Assembly: GCA_964106915.2 (NCBI GenBank)
Contig: OZ066914.1
Length of the DNA: 64,000 bases
Reading direction: 5' to 3' (one strand)
Origin: Podarcis gaigeae
Lineage: Eukaryota
Shown here: piece after piece, positions 16,396-43,765 of the stretch
How the letters are laid out: each line of letters begins with the position of its first letter
How positions within the stretch are numbered: position 1 is the first letter of the stretch
Notes under the pieces: model-generated
What the model saw: only the letters and a program-made list of their open reading frames with translations
The model's database searches: none
What the model was told of the DNA's origin: nothing
Made by a program: the position numbers and the translations under genes

Positions 16396-19300
16396 TTTCT
16401 TTGCTTTTTTGCTCCCACCCAGTCTGGTGGGGGAGGAGCGGTGGCGATTTTAAAGCGGTGTTCACTACAATGCAGCTTATTCACATTAAACAGTTATTAA
16501 ACATAAATTGGTTTAACATAATGTGCAAACACAGCCAGTATGTCTACTGCTAATTCTTGTGCTGGCGTCCCAATAACAAATAATTAGAAATAAAGTAGCT
16601 TGTCTTGTACAGTGGAACCTTGGAAGCCGAACGCCTGTAAACTCGAATGTTTGGCTCCCGAACAATCGAAAACCAGAAGTGATTGTTCTGGTTTTTGAAT
16701 GATTTTGGAAATTGAACGTCCGGCACGGCTTCTGCAGCTTCTGATTGGCTGCAGGACACTCCTGCACCCAATCAGAAGCCACGCCTTGGAAGTTGAACAT
16801 TCTGGAAGTTGAACAGACTTCCGGAACAAGAATTAGCAGTAGACATACTGGCTGTGTTTGCACATTATGTTAAACCAATTTAAGTTTAATAACTGTTTAA
16901 TGTGAATAAGCTGCATACATAGAATATAACCCTATGAATATTTATAATAGCTGTGTAACCACTTGTTCTTGTGCTGGAGTCCCAATAACAGCTATTATAA
17001 ATATTCATAGGGTTATATTCTATGTAGCATGCAACAAAATGTTCCATCAGCTCAAGGATTTCTCCTTGTGCAACTGAACTTAATCCCCCCATCGCCCTCC
17101 TCCACATGCCCCCTAGATCTGTTCTGAGGTTTCCCCAAACCTTCTAGAGCAGATATGGGGTCATGAAGAGAGGGGAATCACATTGCACTAGCACTAACCT
17201 TTGCACTAGCACAACTATTCTGCCCATAGTAATGTTCACTGAATAAAAATATGCAGAATAAGTAGATATGCAAGTTTGCTTCCTTTGCTTAATTGATTCC
17301 GGCTACAGAATTTGCCATTTTCTTGCAAGTCAAACTGAGGATGTCACTTTGCATGTTTCTGCACTGAAATCTTGGGAAACATAGACAGAATCCTGGTGGT
17401 GCTTAAACACTAGTGAAGATGTTGTTGTAGAGACTGAAGATTTGTATATCCAGTTGTTTAGAGTGCTTATCCTATCTCACACTAGTATGAACGTCCAGGA
17501 GCATCCCCCAAGAGAAGTCATGATGGAGAGTGTGCTGCTGCCCCAAGTGAGTCTTCTGCTGTTCCACTTTCTCAAATGCAGATAATTCCAAATGTCTACC
17601 CTTAAATTCCGATCAACCAGCTTAATTTTTCTGACTTACTCGCTTTCCAGCTTATGTTTGGGTAGTTTTGATTCATGTTTGCAGGGCATTTGCCTTTAGT
17701 CTTGTCCTTCCTGTCCTCCCATATCTCCCATACCCTCCCATATCTTGTCTACATATTTTTATCTGTGTTATGCTAGTTATCTGGGATGTCTCCTTGAGAT
17801 GTGAGAGTCAGGTGCACTGGTTTCTTACCCACATAGCTCAGTATTTTGAATTGATCGCAGTAACTGTGCAGTAGACAGTGTTGTCTGAGCTGTTGTTGGG
17901 GGCAGAATAGGTATGAGCTATGAAAATACAACCACTATTCTGGAGGGCCAAAAGGGCACAGGATTGGCAAGTTAAGAAGACTTCTGTATTTTCATTAGTG
18001 CTGAGGGGAACATTTTTCTCATCACTGCAGCACTACAGGAAGAAAGGATATGGGAACTTTACAGCCTATGATCTTAATGGCATTTCTTAACACAGGAAGG
18101 CAGGGAAACATATGATAGTCTTTTGGGTCAGCCATGTGACCCTAGATTCCTCCTTCAGTTCGTTCCCTGTTTTCACCCTGGACTTAACCTTTTTCTTCCA
18201 GCTCCCTTCAGCCTCCTCCGGATGTACAGTGGTGCCTCGCAAGACGAAAAGAATCCTTTCCGCGATTCTCTTCGTCTAGCGGTTTTTTCGTCTTGCGAAG
18301 CAAGCCCATTGACAGCTTAGCGGATTAGCGTTTTAGCGGCTTAGCGGATAAGCAGCTTAGCGGCTTAGAAAAAGGGGAGGGGGGAACCCCGCAGGAACTC
18401 GCAAGACATTTTCGTCTTGCGAAGCAAGCCCATAGGAAATTCGTTTTGCGAAGCACCTCCAAAACGGAAAACTCTTTCGTCTAGCGAGTTTTCCGTCTTG
18501 CGGGGCACCACTGTAACTCTTAACTTTGGATCTGTGTGCATTATTCTTCAATTTCACAGCTGCCATTGGTGTTAGTTTTGGAATGCCTTCAGCATCTGTC
18601 TTATACTTTCATCTAACATAATTAAAGGAAGAGCCTTGGGTCACATGGCTGGCCCAAAGGACTATCATATGTTTCATTGCCTACTAGGGTTATTGGTGGA
18701 TATAATCCAGCATATTTGATGTCTTGCCCTAGTTAGAACATTCATGGTAAGGGCCCAACATTCCTATTTATGATAATACCAAAGAAAATTCTGTTGTCCT
18801 TGTTCAAATAGGAAATCAGGATAAATATAAATATTAATTTGCAGATGACTTCAATACATCCAGCTAATCAGCTGCCCCCTTATAAAGTTAATGATTAGTG
18901 GGAAACCTTTTATGTGTAAAAAGTTGGGGTTGACTAAAAGAAAGCTAGTATAGTAGCTGTTCATCACTCAAGAGCAGAATTTTGCCTTTTTATTGCCTGG
19001 TTTAACTTTGAATTCTCAATAGTAGACTCTTGAAGTTGCCACATTGTAAATAAATGATTATTTTGGTACAGCGGGAAGCCGGATTGAAATCTTGGAGCTG
19101 CAGGATTTGGAAAAGGAATGTGTGCTGGCTCGCATACGGCTAACTTTAGCACAACATGATTCAACAACAACTGCTATTACAGGTAAGCTCAGGAATTACG
19201 TTCATACTACTTGGCTTAATAACTGTACAGAGGGTGAGCAATTTAATCTCTGTGTGGGAGATCAGTAACCCACAAGAAATGTATTTCCACATCCTCCTGT

Positions 19301-28270: not shown

Positions 28271-31200
28271 CCACTATGTCAACACCATTATCCTAGTCCT
28301 CGTTGTTATCTTACGAGGTTCCCAAGGGCTCTTTCAAATTCATAATCTCGGTCGCCCTTCCCACTACTGGATGACCTGGGCCGTTGCTTTTGCCCATTTT
28401 GCAGACGGGAAGCCTGAGGCTGGGAGATCCTAACTTCTTCCAGGCCTCCTAGTCAGTTTGCCTGGGTTTGTTGGTACTCGCTGTGCTTCCTCACAGCCCG
28501 CCCCCCTTTCCCGGACTCTTGTTCTTCGATATGTTTAGCTTAATTCTATTGTCCCTTTAATCTAGTTAGCAAAAGCAGTGTAAAGAAATAAAGCTGAAAT
28601 CCTGTGCGGGCTTACTTGGGAGTTAGCATCATTGAGCACAATGGAATTAAATTTCCAGGTAAATTCCAATAGGATTGTGCTGCCTTTCTAGTCATGACCC
28701 TCTCATTCTCCAAGGTGGTGATTGCTCTATTCTGTACACAAAATAGACGTATAGATGCTTCCTTTTTTTCTCTTGATCCAACCTGTGCCTGTGGGATTAG
28801 CCTACCGAACAGGAGACACAATGTTTCTGAGTTCCTGTTCAGTCTCTTGTTCTACCTAGACTACTTGGTTCCTGTGCAACTTTAGCTTGGGCTGATGCTG
28901 CCATTTCAATAGGGATTAGTGTAGTGCTCTTGTGCATATTCGTATAGCAGGTATATTGTGAGGAGTATTGGTGTATGATGGAGGAGGATGCTGACTCCAT
29001 GTTACTCTACGACATTAGTGGGGAATCTTTGTTCCACAGGCTCAGTTAGGCCCACCAGATCCTTTCAGCCAAGCCACCCACCTGCCCTACATCTGCTGTC
29101 TATTACAGACAAGAGCTTGGATTAAAGGAGCTTTTTCTATGATATTCCTTGCAGAGGGCTGCCCAAGCACTGGCTATCAATGGATTGTCAGAGCTTGGGA
29201 AATTCTGTGCACAGGTTGTATACAATCAGCTGTCACGCATAGTGCTCCACAAGACTCAGTGATCAGCTAATCATCACTAAACCATGTAGGCAAAAATGGG
29301 TCATCTGATGTAATTGTGATGCCTGGTGATTGATAGGTAGACAGCCCCACCCACCTGTCAAACTTGGCCTGTGGGGTGGGTAGGAGAGAGAATGATCTGG
29401 ACAGGTGACTGGATGCATTTTCTATTTGTGCTCTCCAGCAATCCTAGTACCAGTACTGTGTAGTATAGTATAGTTCATATTATGTACATCCCCTTATTCT
29501 TGGGTGTTCTCATTTTTATTTATGTAATATATATTGTATTTATATCTTGCCAGCTTCCCAGGTGGCATTCCAGCCAAGCACTAACCAGACCCAGATGTGC
29601 TTTAGTATGTTCCCTGTAGCTTCAGAATATGGATGTTGTAGGCATGTATAGAAACATCAGTGTATAATTAAATCTGCATCTTTTAGCTTATTTATTTATT
29701 TGTTAAAATTTCCATTGTTATGCACCCCATTGTTATTTAGACTGCAAGCTCTATTTGTTTCTGTTGGGGGTGTTGTTTTGTAAAGCACAATGTACACTGA
29801 TTTGTGCGTGCATGTACACATTTATAAGTTTTCTTACCAACCCGTCACTAGAAACACCCATGGGTGGTTACAACAATATAATCATATAGTTATTAATACC
29901 AAGTAAAATGTTTATGGTTATAAAACATAGAACAGGAAACCCAACCAAAACAGTTTAGATTCACCATAAGAGGAGAGTGCCGCAAAACAATATACCTTTA
30001 CTGTCAAAGCCTAGGTCACTGCCTCTCATTGGTTTTCCTGAGGTGGGAATTCCAAATGATTGTGTTGAGCTGAAAAGGCCTTGTAAATTCTTGCTGATTT
30101 ATTTGCGGTAGCCTTTCTCTGATACTGATTTATTTATCAATCTGTAAGGGTATTGCCAGCCTAGCAGTTCGAAAGCATGTCAAAGTGCAAGTAGATAAAT
30201 AGGTACTGCTCCGGCGGGAAGGTAAACGGTGTTTCCGTGTGCTGCCCTGGTTCGCCAGAAGTGGCTTGGTCATACTAGCACATGACCCGGAAGCTGTACG
30301 CCGGCTCCCTCAGCCAATAAAGCGAGATGAGCACCGCAACCCCAGAGTCGGTCACGACTGGACCTAATGGTCAGGGGTCCCTTTACTTTACCTTTTTTTA
30401 AGGGTATTTATAAACTAGTAACTCATAAGAAAAATGTCAAGTTGATTGTGTTACAGGCTATTCCCAGCTAATGGGGTCCAAGAGGAAGGACGTGCTGTTT
30501 TGTAGGGTGATGGTAAAGAGATGGATTAGAGATGAATAGAATCAGATGAGTGATTTTGTGCTGTAGTAGCACATTTAAGGTCAGGCACAATAATTAAAAC
30601 ACTGTGTGGAATTTGTCTCTTCTCACTTGCAACAGCACAGGAATTACCCAGGTGGAAGGTCTTAACACTCAGGCAACCACATTCTACATAGCGTTCAGTA
30701 ACAATGATTACTCTAACTGAGGGCAAAGATTGTGCTTTCCCACAACAAAGTGTTATGACGCAAGTGCTATGAAAATCAGAGAAGGTGACTAGATGTCATG
30801 CAGCTGTTTATATATTGCACAGTAAAATGAATCTTCTGGCAAGATGCTAAGAAATTATTAGAATGGTGTAAAGAGGCCTTTACCAAAAATGATGTTATGA
30901 TTGTAATTGGCCAAAACTGAAGATATAGTTAGTTTTGCTTTTTCTAGCAGCACGCTGCTGTCTCTAAAACTGATTAAAAACAATAAAAAGCTAATTAGCA
31001 TAGGGGCTTGTGTCCTAAATAAAGAGTTTCCCTATATCTATATCTCATTCCAGTGTGTCTTAAGTATTTTTTCCCCTATCCCCTGGGATTGCTAGTTAAA
31101 TATGTATGCTAATTAAATTATATAACGTTTTACTCTCTTTAAATGTTGCTTTTGTTCTTGTTATGGTAGAAGTTTTGCTATTTCCTCAAATTATGGCAAA

Positions 31201-37200: not shown

Positions 37201-40200
37201 AGATGAGGAGCAGGACTTAAAGGTATGCGGGTTTATGGTTCTGCTGCGAAACCTAAGCAATATTACTTGAGGCAGTTCACACATTTCCAAATGTCTTCAA
37301 ATTGAGTTGGCTTTTTTCTCCTTTCTACTTTCTTTTCTTCAGTCAGTTGAAATTGCCACACAGGTATCAGTCCTTTTCATGGCATGATTAGGTGCTGCTA
37401 TACTGATTGGAGATACCTAAAGTATGCAATTGATTATTGACTGTCTGGAATCTGAGCACACAATGAATGTGTACACATGAAGTTTGTAGTTCAACTCAGT
37501 TTGAAACTGCCACCCTTCTTGTGGGTTATATTGGCCTTTAGATCCCTATCAGTACTTAACCTTGGCTAGGAGACTTCAAAGCTGTGTAGCTTTATTGTGC
37601 AGAGTAGTTTTGAAATTCTTCTAGGTTATTATTCTGTAGGGGTGCTTCTGATACTGCTTTTTAGTGACGTGTGTCAGGTATTAGTAGCAAATAATGTATT
37701 TCTTGATGGGAATTAGGAAGGTGTGGCACTTAAATGCAGTTGTTAATGTCTGTCAGAAATACTTAATTGGAAATAACATTCAGCCATTATGTTCTTTGTG
37801 TGTTCCCTATACCTATTATCCCTGTATTAAGTGTTGCTGTTTAGAAGATGTTGGCACTGGGAAATGGGACAGTCTCTTCTTGTGTGAGAATAAATTGAAA
37901 ATAGTTGCATTAGCCATATGGATTATCCATGTGTAACACTCGAGTTAAAAGTAGAGAAAATATTAGATAGCCTCAACGTATTCCTGCGAAATGGCTGCTA
38001 ATGCTGTGGGCAGAGCATACTTTCAGAATTTGGCACAATTTTTTGCCAATTGTAAGTTACTGGTCAGATCACACCTCTTTTTGTTAAAACAGATGGTGTC
38101 TTGTACACTTCAGCATTGCAATTGCCTTGTGCATTGTGACTAGCACAAAATTATTGACCCCTTGCTTGCTTTACTTCTGGCAGTTTCAGATTGGAGAGCT
38201 GGCCAACATGTTGATAAGCAAGCTGGAGTTCTTGGGCATCAGTAGACAATCCATCTCTAACTTCCACATGCTACTGTTGCAGACTGAGGTAACGAAAGTT
38301 TACCTTTTATTGAAAATTAACCATAGGGAGCCAAACAACTGGCAGCATTGCAGTGTGATAGGAATCTAGGAAGTTTTAAGTATTATGGCATGGATAACAG
38401 GCTTCCTCTCCCTCGTTCCTTCTCGCTCCCTCCCACTTGGCCCTCAAGCAGAATGCTTTAGTCCAGTAACGTATCTGAGGTTTTCTTGATCTATATGTAG
38501 TTCTCATCATGTTCTCTGTCATTAGTGCTGACTCTTGTATTAGTGCTACTAACATTGGGTGAGATTCATCTAACCAGTCTGATTTTTCCTTGTGCAACTG
38601 GGCTTCCCAGCCCTCTCCCTTGCATGCCCCCTGTGCCCTCCAAAATTGGCACAGGGGGGTCAGTAGAACCCACAGAACAGCATACATTGGGATAGGAGAG
38701 GAAGAGATGGTTCTGTCTGGCAAGCTGTCATGTGTGTGCAAACACAACAACTGACGTTGAATTCCACCCACTGTGTAGAACTGCAAAGTTAAGTGGAAAA
38801 TGATGTACATGAGACCAATTGTCTCTACAGGTTTTTCATTATTTTTCCTTGCCTGCTTGGTATAGACCCGTATTGCAGACTGGCGGGAAGGAGCTCTCCA
38901 AGGAAACTACCTCAAACGCAAATTGCAAGATGCAGCTGAACAGCTAAAACAGTATGAAATAAACGCCGCCCCTAAAGGCTGGTCCTGCCACTGGGACAGG
39001 TACGCACTCTTCTCCCCTTTTCACCTTTCACCTTTGACATCTCAGACATGATTTGTGACCATCACCACCTGCCGACGTGCCGTCATCTGTCTGGAGACTG
39101 AGAGCAGCTGCACTTAGCGGTGCTGAGCGGGCAGAGAGCCTCTGGCACATACAGAGTTTCAGCCAGCCACAAAAATTGGAGAAATATAAAGTCTGTGTTA
39201 AGTGTGTTGAAATGGATTTGATTCCGCGATTGGACAGAGCTGGTGTTTACTCTTGAGTGTAAATGCGCTAAGGAGGGCGGGCTTGGGGGGTCGCGCATGC
39301 GAGAGCTCTGTGCACATTGCAGGATCTCAGGAACTCCGCTCCCAAGTAACGCCTGTGTCCTTATGGAAAGCTCCCTCACTGAGGATCTCAACGAAGAACA
39401 AGATAACTGTCTCCTGCCAGCAGGTCAGACCAAACTATTTCTTCTTATATTTGCCTTTCTTGATTCTTTTTGTTTATTTGAAATCTTTGCTCTTTTGTTT
39501 TTCAGCTCCCAGATCCTCTCCCTCTCAGTAGCAATTCACTATGTCTGACACCAAGAGTATCATAAATGTGACTGCAGCAGTCCATGGGGGAGCAGCCATC
39601 TTTCATAAATTGGGCTGTTTCTCTTTTTGCTATTCTGGAAGGAAATGAATCCTGAGACTACCTAAAAAGTCTATTTCCTAATGCATCCTTGAACCTTTAA
39701 TTGCACACCAGCCACAAGCTGCTTCTATAACCCTCTACTTTTAGAGTGGAGGGTCAGGGCTGTGATCACAGAGCCAGCAGCGCAAACAGTTTGGAGTAAG
39801 CCCATCTTGCAAATCCTTCCTCAAAGCTGTTTGTTGCCTTTGTGAACAGCAGTCCTACTGTAAGAGGTTCTTCCTGTGAGAGCACTCCGCTGTCGCGGGA
39901 GAGGACTATATCATTGTGTCAGTGCAGGGGCGAGAGCATAAAACCTTGTTTTCTTTCTTGTGATTTAGGGATCATAGACGCTATTTCTATGTTAACGAAC
40001 AATCAGGCGAATCCCAATGGGAGTTCCCAGATGGGGAGGAGGAAGAGGAGGGGCAAATCGTAGAGAATAAAATGGAAGCTCTTCCTAAACAAGGACTAAA
40101 GGAGAAAATGGAGTCTGGTGCAGAATCGTCTGATAATACTACAGGTACTGGACCTTGAGGGTTTGCTAAAAGAAAGTTAACCCAGTTTGGAATAATGTTT

Positions 40201-43200: not shown

Positions 43201-43765
43201 TTTCCTCTTGCATATGAAGTGATTTATTAATTCTGTGACATTCCTTATATACAGAATGGATTTAATGTGCTATATCATACTATGTATTGATATAATAGTG
43301 AATGTGGGTGGTACGTAACACATCCCATCATTGCAAGGATTTATGTTTGCACAACAGAACTCCCCTCTTCCTCCCCCCCTGTGCGTGCTAAATCTGTTCT
43401 ATGGTTCACTTCACCCTCCAGAAAGATTTGGGGAGGACAGGAACAGGGGAGGAGAGTAGGAAACATTTCCATTGTACAAGCATAAATCTTTGCACTGGCA
43501 GGACACGCTAGTTGGATACATGCTTTGTAAGTAGGTATTGTGTAAACATGAAAGCAGGTTCTTTGGGGGATCGGTTGCCTTCACAAATGGGCACAGTCTG
43601 GAAAATATCAGAAATCTTGATTTCTTTAGTTCTCCCATTGCTGACTGACAATCCTAATGTTTTGTTCTTCACAGTGGTATGGCAGAGAGAAATGCAAATT
43701 TTGAGGCTTTGCCTGATGACTGGCGATCTCGACTCAAGAGGCGGAAAGCTACTTCAAGCACATGA
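27851..43765 (+). CDS. FNBP4: Formin-binding protein 4 (FBP30; two WW domains, proline-rich), complete, 17 exons, about 955 aa
   Basis: Exons 27851-27974, 31728-31820, 33286-33422, 33679-33862, 34192-34339, 34414-34543, 35138-35479, 36342-36540, 37098-37222, 38184-38288, 38866-38999, 39969-40144, 40789-41108, 41654-41798, 41890-42146, 42649-42806, 43675-43765 (TGA); total 2868 nt. N-term MGKKSRAAPAGRRPILQLSPPGPRG; GGLCLLGAYEDSD; WW1 GDWQEVWDENTGCYYYWNTQTNEVTWELP; WW2 PKGWSCHWD|RDHRRYFYVNEQSGESQWEFP; C-term KMPSLVKKWQ...AERNANFEALPDDWRSRLKRRK. Confidence 0.97.
30155..30398 (+). mobile_element. 5'-truncated Sauria SINE
   Basis: Same core and tail as 21720; TSD TAAGGGTATT (30145-30154, 30399-30408). 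Confidence 0.9.
31960..32576 (+). mobile_element. Solo LTR (probably Gypsy-type) in FNBP4 intron 2
   Basis: Ends TGTCA...TGACA with 5-bp TSD GATGC (31955-31959, 32577-32581); 617 bp, purine-rich. Confidence 0.85.
34824..34930 (+). mobile_element. Degenerate tRNA-derived SINE head
   Basis: ATAGCTCAGTGGAAGAGCAC A-box followed by a decayed B-box; no intact cloverleaf. Confidence 0.5.
39000..39968 (+). promoter_or_regulatory. FNBP4 intron 11: CpG-rich, structured putative splicing-regulatory (retention / poison-exon) element
   Basis: About 20 CpGs in 969 nt, no recognisable TE, several long helices, decoy acceptor at 39045, in-frame TGA at 39049-39051. Confidence 0.6.

Follow-up and report, generated by a model that had tools for sequence, protein, structure and literature searches.

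Three conserved sense-strand hairpins near the 3' end of FNBP4 intron 11, a probable cis-acting module of a regulated intron

Conserved regulatory elements are known in detained or retained introns and in ultraconserved poison-exon units, among them the intron 4 silencer of OGT, the hairpins and retained intron of MAT2A, the ARGLU1 unit and the poison exons of SR-protein genes, and regulatory structures close to splice sites include the MAPT exon 10 stem-loop, SMN2 TSL2 and structures that compact the distance between branch point and acceptor. Retained introns released by a signal are known as well, yet to our knowledge the cis elements behind the delay have been identified in very few genes. 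Here, we describe three adjacent RNA hairpins (HP1, HP2 and HP3) at positions 39730-39907 of a 64,000-nucleotide stretch of Podarcis gaigeae DNA (contig OZ066914.1 of assembly GCA_964106915.2; 'the window' below), where they lie in an intron of FNBP4, the gene of a WW-domain protein. The folds are thermodynamically exceptional and specific to the sense strand, and substitutions that preserve or compensate the pairing maintain HP2 and HP3 in all amniotes and HP1 in sauropsids, at a fixed distance from the acceptor. We think it probable that the three hairpins form a conserved cis-acting structured module of the FNBP4 pre-mRNA that helps to control the removal of a regulated, detained intron, a function that we infer.

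The module sits within the last 240 nt of FNBP4 intron 11, and because a cassette exon occupies 39323-39423 upstream, the hairpins belong to the sub-intron that follows this exon, termed intron 11b here. In mouse neurons, the Fnbp4 intron 'i11' was validated as retained in nuclear transcripts and spliced upon stimulation, and the transcripts retaining it are stable in the nucleus (Mazille et al. 2022, PMC9627664). Moreover, Fnbp4 is among the most nuclear-enriched polyadenylated RNAs, at 19-38-fold, beside Neat1, Malat1 and Pabpn1 (Hutchinson et al. 2007, PMC1800850). The published mouse i11 primers map to the cassette exon, to intron 11b within its first 85 nt and to the exon of the second WW domain (WW2), and our alignment shows their letters in the sequences of rabbit and echidna; together with the end-to-end alignment of the intron, rabbit and echidna included, this identifies intron 11b as the counterpart of mouse i11. 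Neither of the two papers mentions conservation or secondary structure of this intron, and no description of hairpins was found in the literature on FNBP4.

The folding of the 178-nt stretch 39730-39907 was compared with 200 dinucleotide shuffles on each strand. On the plus strand it reaches -79.8 kcal/mol, against -54.7 +/- 4.5 kcal/mol for the shuffles (z -5.64; 0/200 as good), and its minimum free energy (MFE) structure consists of the three adjacent hairpins; the reverse complement, at -54.0 kcal/mol (z -0.33), is ordinary. Folded one at a time over 39730-39754, 39756-39857 and 39866-39907, HP1, HP2 and HP3 have the plus-strand z-scores listed in Table 1 and reverse-complement z-scores of -3.0, -0.5 and +0.3, respectively. 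The hairpins had come to attention through a sequence-only reading, in which their arms were paired by hand, and the sequence and pairings that it described are present across 39730-39907. It had further called the helices rich in G-U pairs, which amount to 11 of the 64 pairs in the module, and had proposed a comparison with shuffles as a check, which the module passes on the plus strand. Its claim of selection on RNA structure, as opposed to a DNA inverted duplication, agrees with the ordinary minus strand, with the strand asymmetry of the orthologues and with the pairing-preserving substitutions described below.

Because that reading had picked the region out of 64 kb, we also scanned the whole window in 3192 segments of 178 nt on both strands, with the MFE regressed on composition. 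The plus strand of the module takes rank 7, at -4.6 residual standard deviations, and is the top strand-asymmetric folding outlier in the 64 kb; it is surpassed by a single locus, at 16.5-17.0 kb, where a DNA inverted-repeat element folds just as well on one strand as on the other. Probably a transposon remnant, this element (16470-17026) has inverted-repeat arms of 96 nt, 97% complementary and 255 nt apart, and a 39-nt perfect palindrome. Separately, the stretch 43330-43507 folds about 4.3-4.6 residual standard deviations better than composition predicts on both strands, and no inverted repeat of at least 20 nt was found in it.

Orthologous FNBP4 loci were sought starting from one single-exon open reading frame and then through database protein identifiers, and the comparison covers Podarcis, Hemicordylus, Python, Eublepharis (gecko), Trachemys (turtle), Apteryx (kiwi), Corvus (crow), Tachyglossus, Oryctolagus, Pristis and Scleropages, the mammals being echidna and rabbit and the fishes sawfish and arowana. 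In eight orthologues folded singly, the HP2-HP3 segment has plus-strand z-scores of -4.9, -6.0, -4.0, -4.0, -4.4, -2.3, -1.9 and -4.3, and minus-strand z-scores of 0 to -1.7. Folding beyond shuffles on the transcribed strand only, the mark of a cis-regulatory RNA structure, is found in the lizard module and in all eight. The two-hairpin architecture of HP2 and HP3 returns in the single folds of turtle, kiwi, crow and rabbit, and RNAalifold recovers both hairpins unprompted on the 10-amniote alignment of the module and again on the alignment of the whole intron. Additionally, a covariance model of HP2 and HP3 finds one match per amniote locus, always in the orthologous place and at 127-165 bits, with none elsewhere. 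The spacing from HP3 to exon 12 is 61-62 nt in sauropsids and 64-69 nt in mammals, in keeping with the roughly 60 nt to the 3' splice site that had been read from the lizard sequence.

Within the amniote alignment, standard pairs occupy 94-96% of the cells, against 91-93% in column shuffles (0/500), and pairing falls to 40-52% of cells when the partners are slid. As indicative counts, two-sided change affects 6-10 pairs, where the shuffles give 2.4-4.6. With substitutions counted relative to the window and expectations drawn from the intron's own substitution spectrum, the counts, again indicative, are 39 of 63 one-sided changes that retain pairing (22.8 expected) and 8 of 11 two-sided changes (4.5 expected). 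Paired columns are also the more uniform, with a majority-base fraction of 0.92 against 0.67 in unpaired columns. Pairing is thus upheld by consistent and compensatory substitutions, with moderate support (6-10 two-sided pairs, few events, related sequences).

Each hairpin contributes to this pattern in its own way. Pairing in the helices of HP2 amounts to 90-100% in amniotes. At 39764-39847, every squamate has G-C and every other amniote A-U, and 39800-39816 occurs as G-C, A-U, G-U and U-A. The arms of HP2 are conserved, and its apical loop varies in sequence and in length (15-23 nt) and remains pyrimidine-rich. HP3 cells are 97% paired in the 10 amniotes, with a change from U-A to G-C at 39868-39905 in turtle and birds and pairing-preserving exchanges at 39866-39907 (G-U/G-C) and 39876-39896 (G-C/G-U). 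The covariation that the sequence-only reading had suggested looking for is therefore present in amniotes, for example at 39764-39847, 39868-39905 and 39800-39816. Within squamates, HP1 retains its pairing through U-G/C-G, U-A/U-G and A-U/G-U exchanges, and turtle and birds carry a differently sequenced hairpin of -16 to -20 kcal/mol at its position. Judged from these alignments, HP2 and HP3 extend amniote-wide and HP1 sauropsid-wide, so that the module has persisted over a span of about 300 million years.

The comparison also revises the pairing scheme first drawn by hand. HP1 stands as a hairpin, with 11 bp where 10 had been counted. HP3 likewise stands, and the outer helix first given to it (39851-56 with 39902-07) falls away, being broken as C-C in turtle and birds: 39851-56 instead closes the base of HP2 with 39756-61, and the partner of 39902-07 is 39866-71; in turtle and birds, the first of these helices shows a G-U to G-C change and the second a U-A to G-C change. 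The hairpin HP2 is retained too, its lower GCUGU/ACAGC helix overlapping a slippery region in which the best-supported register, 39763-65/39846-48, continues the next helix. The resulting architecture is set out in Table 1.

Table 1. Parts of the hairpin module and the surrounding features of FNBP4 in the window
Feature	Position	Strand	Description
HP1	39730-39754	+	11-bp hairpin, 3-nt loop; -15.6 kcal/mol, z -4.8
HP2	39756-39856	+	Long imperfect hairpin, about 36 bp; -40.4 kcal/mol, z -4.3; minus strand z -0.5
HP2 basal and lower helices	39756-61/39851-56; 39763-73/39838-48; 39777-79/39835-37	+	
HP2 upper helices	39782-92/39824-34; 39794-96/39820-22; 39798-800/39816-18	+	
HP2 apical loop	39801-15	+	Pyrimidine-rich, 15 nt
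HP2-HP3 hinge	39857-39865	+	Single-stranded in MFE and consensus structures; sequence poorly conserved
HP3	39866-39907	+	17 bp (39866-79/39893-907 and 39881-83/39889-91), loop of 5 nt; -23.3 kcal/mol, z -3.5; minus strand z +0.3
Candidate fourth helix	39925-39962	+	Pairs purine tract 39925-35 to the exon 12 acceptor's polypyrimidine tract (39952-62); RNAalifold
FNBP4 intron 11	39001-39968	+	968 nt
Cassette exon	39323-39423	+	101 nt, frameshifting; 3' splice site TTGCAG/GA, 5' splice site CAG/GTCAGA
Intron 11b (sub-intron)	39424-39968	+	5' splice site CAG/GTCAGA at 39423/39424; acceptor AG 39967-68
FNBP4 exon 12	39969-40146	+	Encodes second half of WW2 domain; 98% identical to Podarcis lilfordi FNBP4

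The surroundings of the hairpins are themselves unusual for an intron of this gene. Exon peptides in the window are 97-98% identical to Podarcis lilfordi FNBP4, as befits DNA of a lacertid-like lizard, and intron 11 can be aligned end to end with an identity of 99.6% in Podarcis, 95.3% in Hemicordylus, 93.4% in Python and 92.0% in the gecko among squamates, and of 75.7% in turtle, 75.4% in kiwi, 72.1% in echidna and 72.4% in rabbit; it is also alignable from end to end in crow (later alignments of the intron begin at 39062). The other FNBP4 introns gave no alignment between the lizard and gecko, turtle or echidna, where the exons alone align. In squamates, intron 11 (92-95%) is more conserved than the coding exon 12 (87.6% at the nucleotide level). 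Amniote copies of intron 11 measure 957-1004 nt, and the size is still much the same in sawfish (971 nt) and arowana (1010 nt), although only short pieces of it can be aligned in the two fishes.

The splice sites of the cassette exon are invariant, and none of its lengths is divisible by 3: squamates and turtle have 101 nt, birds 98 nt and mammals 103 nt. In turtle, the NCBI model of isoform X5 (XP_074854255.1) contains the cassette, followed by exon 12 out of frame, and the exon looks like a poison-type exon. The 5' splice site of intron 11b that it provides is invariant in amniotes, with a core matched in arowana too. RNAalifold further predicts an invariant long-range helix, 39090-39106/39488-39513, which would loop out the cassette exon, and a second invariant helix, 39122-39131/39413-39421, which covers the end of the cassette beside its 5' splice site; neither ever varies, so that covariation is uninformative on both. 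The 3' arm of the first contains a perfect acceptor-like TTTTGTTTTTCAG at 39505.

Other observations concern the same intron and locus. Positions 39228-39310 form an amniote-invariant block with a CCAAT-like GATTGG, a GC-box GGGCGGG and an NRF1-like GCGCATGCG; the block is promoter-like as DNA, yet it is also predicted to form helices (GGACAGAGCT with AGCTCTGTGC). Furthermore, many small sequencing runs, each of 39-148 million letters, in which several closely related organisms are represented, cover about 90% of the single-copy stretch 38860-40150, and this coverage hints that the FNBP4 locus may be a sequence-capture target of the ultraconserved-element type.

How might the module act? We propose that it would do so in cis, on the removal of intron 11b. 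A branch point A is predicted at about 39941, where a conserved U-R-A motif lies 27 nt from the AG and follows the last upstream AG. Downstream of HP3, RNAalifold predicts the candidate fourth helix, which also appears in the single-sequence MFE of 7/7 species folded and which holds the predicted branch A within its loop. The hairpins may thus compact the 3' part of the intron and stack beside this weak purine-tract/polypyrimidine-tract helix with the branch point in its loop; alternatively or additionally, they may offer a long duplex and a pyrimidine-rich loop to a binding protein. By either route, U2AF and U2 would engage only slowly before the structure is remodelled, and the folded 3' intron domain would contribute to the slow, regulated removal of intron 11b. 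A further predicted helix, 39546-51/39916-21 (TGACAC/GTGTCA; RNAalifold), would close a 370-nt domain around HP1-HP3; its substitutions are one-sided only.

The sequence-only reading had offered a more direct version, in which the hairpins gate access of U2 to the branch point. Gating by the hairpins themselves is not borne out by their position, the predicted branch A lying about 34 nt beyond the end of HP3, and the idea lives on in the modified form of a folded 3' intron domain, plausible but unproven. A bolder extension, which we offer tentatively and think rather unlikely, is that the hairpin triplet and the purine/polypyrimidine helix make up a physical 'detention switch', holding the completely transcribed and polyadenylated FNBP4 pre-mRNA nuclear and splicing-incompetent until a signal-dependent helicase or RNA-binding protein would open the folded domain. 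If true, amniotes would have kept, from their common ancestor on, a store of FNBP4 message encoded in RNA structure.

Several points weigh against a module that controls intron removal throughout amniotes. The stretch of about 34 nt between the end of HP3 and the predicted branch A means that the hairpins leave the branch point uncovered, and the candidate fourth helix, which would cover the polypyrimidine tract, folds no better than its shuffles do (z -1.3 to +1.0 in 7 species), as any pairing of a purine tract with a pyrimidine tract should. The link to retention would carry over to the lizard intron by analogy with mouse. As for conservation, alignment cells are phylogenetically non-independent, so that the pair and substitution counts are indicative only; the two-sided changes mostly trace to one or two branches, and 24 of the 54 pairs are invariant, hence uninformative either way. 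HP1 is missing in echidna and rabbit, and the mammalian signal is weaker, with a z-score of -1.9 in echidna and one-sided changes kept at 4/12 and 3/8, near expectation. Finally, the covariance model of HP2 and HP3 has no match in the sawfish or arowana intron even with filters off. The 3' part of the sawfish intron (29170-29412 of the sawfish locus) also folds well (z -3.7), into hairpins that are largely palindromic and unrelated to the amniote module, with no homology to it.

Other explanations concern chiefly HP2. It could serve as a platform for a double-stranded-RNA-binding protein of the ADAR, ILF3/NF90, Staufen, DHX9 or NONO/SFPQ type, in which case its role would lie mainly in nuclear retention, stability or A-to-I editing and not directly in splice-site access. 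The duplex of about 36 bp, with small bulges and a conserved shape, fits such a platform; however, it is broken every 3-11 bp, and unbroken runs of this size are short for a strong ADAR or Staufen substrate. The behaviour of the mouse RNA, which is among the most nuclear-enriched polyadenylated RNAs (PMC1800850) and whose intron-retaining form is nuclear-stable (PMC9627664), would also suit a retention platform, whereas the literature gave nothing relevant on editing of FNBP4 RNA. Overall, we regard this explanation as unlikely.

Alternatively, HP2 could be a Microprocessor substrate, either an unannotated intronic microRNA (miRNA) precursor or a hairpin that Drosha cleaves to destroy the unspliced transcript. 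Its stem of about 35 or 36 bp, its loop of 15 nt (15-23 nt among orthologues) and its conserved arms with a variable loop give it the shape of a primary miRNA (pri-miRNA), but no invariant mature arm of about 22 nt is found: substitutions fall at 39787, 39789, 39790, 39827 and 39829, in step with their partners, and include candidate seed positions (C/U at 39827, G/C at 39829). The miRNA families of Rfam 15 are unmatched in lizard, rabbit and kiwi, with best scores of 14-18 bits against gathering thresholds of 60-100, and a miRNA shared by all amniotes would, in a host gene of such broad expression, most probably be annotated by now. A Microprocessor role for HP2 is accordingly very doubtful to us.

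A stable intron-derived RNA acting in trans, akin to a small nucleolar RNA (snoRNA) or to a stable intronic sequence RNA, would be expected to consist of compact, stable, back-to-back hairpins under strong conservation, as the module does. Against it, the hinge has no conserved H box, there is no conserved ACA 3 nt from an end and there are no C/D boxes, no Rfam family matches, and the conservation spans the whole intron, beyond the module; we give this explanation very little credence. The Infernal search against Rfam suggested at the outset returned no family for 39730-39907, and the accompanying proposal of an intron-encoded non-coding RNA (ncRNA) finds no support, with no Rfam family in lizard, rabbit or kiwi, no conserved H/ACA box and no invariant miRNA-like arm. 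More broadly, Rfam 15 gave no gathering-level match in the 64-kb window and, at permissive E-values, nothing overlapping 39730-39907, and the rabbit and kiwi orthologues gave only chance matches of 12-18 bits.

Specific classes could be set aside as well. An H/ACA snoRNA was rejected: hinge and post-HP3 tail vary, without a conserved ANANNA or ACA, HP3 has no internal pocket, and no Rfam snoRNA matches. An interspersed repeat or transposon was likewise rejected, with no second copy in the window by blastn of 39600-39968 or by covariance model and with a minus strand that does not fold; the covariance model finds one copy of the module per species, at the orthologous site. ARAGORN found no transfer RNA (tRNA) in the window, which makes a tRNA-derived short interspersed element unlikely. 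The hairpins are neither a separate gene nor a DNA repeat. Last, a DNA-level element (an intronic enhancer or promoter) with incidental hairpins, or a chance extreme of a 64-kb scan, has in its favour the invariant CCAAT-, GC-box- and NRF1-like motifs at 39228-39310 in the same intron and the choice of the region after a reader had scanned the whole window, but is highly improbable, given a strand asymmetry that recurs in eight further species, G-U pairs that turn into C-A mismatches on the opposite strand, compensatory changes and an HP1 whose sequence turns over with the hairpin kept, neither of which has a DNA-level explanation, and 0/200 shuffles that reach the observed energy.

Returning to a cis-acting module that helps to control the removal of a detained intron, its main interest is that a defined structure of 150-180 nt makes the detention of the FNBP4 intron directly testable, by breaking and restoring the stems. 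Beyond the hairpins, a frameshifting cassette exon, predicted long-range helices and an intron length kept even in fishes come together in this unit, which makes it a strong candidate for a circuit, so far undescribed, that would regulate a WW-domain protein by autoregulation or in response to a signal.

Among described systems, the nearest is mouse Fnbp4 'i11' (PMC9627664), which is the orthologous intron, its primers lying in the conserved cassette exon, at the start of 11b and in the WW2 exon; the mouse papers (PMC9627664, PMC1800850) differ in reporting retention, nuclear location and stimulus-dependent splicing, with the hairpins unmentioned. Animal pri-miRNAs share with HP2 the stem length, the loop size and the combination of conserved arms with a variable loop, but HP2 lacks an invariant mature arm and an Rfam miRNA match, and its arms co-vary like a structural helix. 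The MAPT and SMN2 TSL2 structures resemble the module as local sense-strand hairpins near a regulated splice site, with pairing under selection. They contain the splice site, whereas in FNBP4 the three hairpins are separated by 61 nt from the acceptor and by about 34 nt from the predicted branch point, and only the weak fourth helix touches the polypyrimidine tract. The OGT, MAT2A, ARGLU1 and SR-protein units belong to other genes and have no sequence relation to the FNBP4 module; the METTL16 nonamer of the MAT2A hairpins is absent from it, HP2 having CACAGAGCC, base-paired in the stem. What these units and FNBP4 share is a deeply conserved non-coding unit in a gene linked to RNA processing, with a frameshifting cassette exon and a slowly spliced intron that is as conserved as exons. 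The hairpin module is previously undescribed, within a regulatory unit of a known kind, a detained intron with a poison-type cassette exon.

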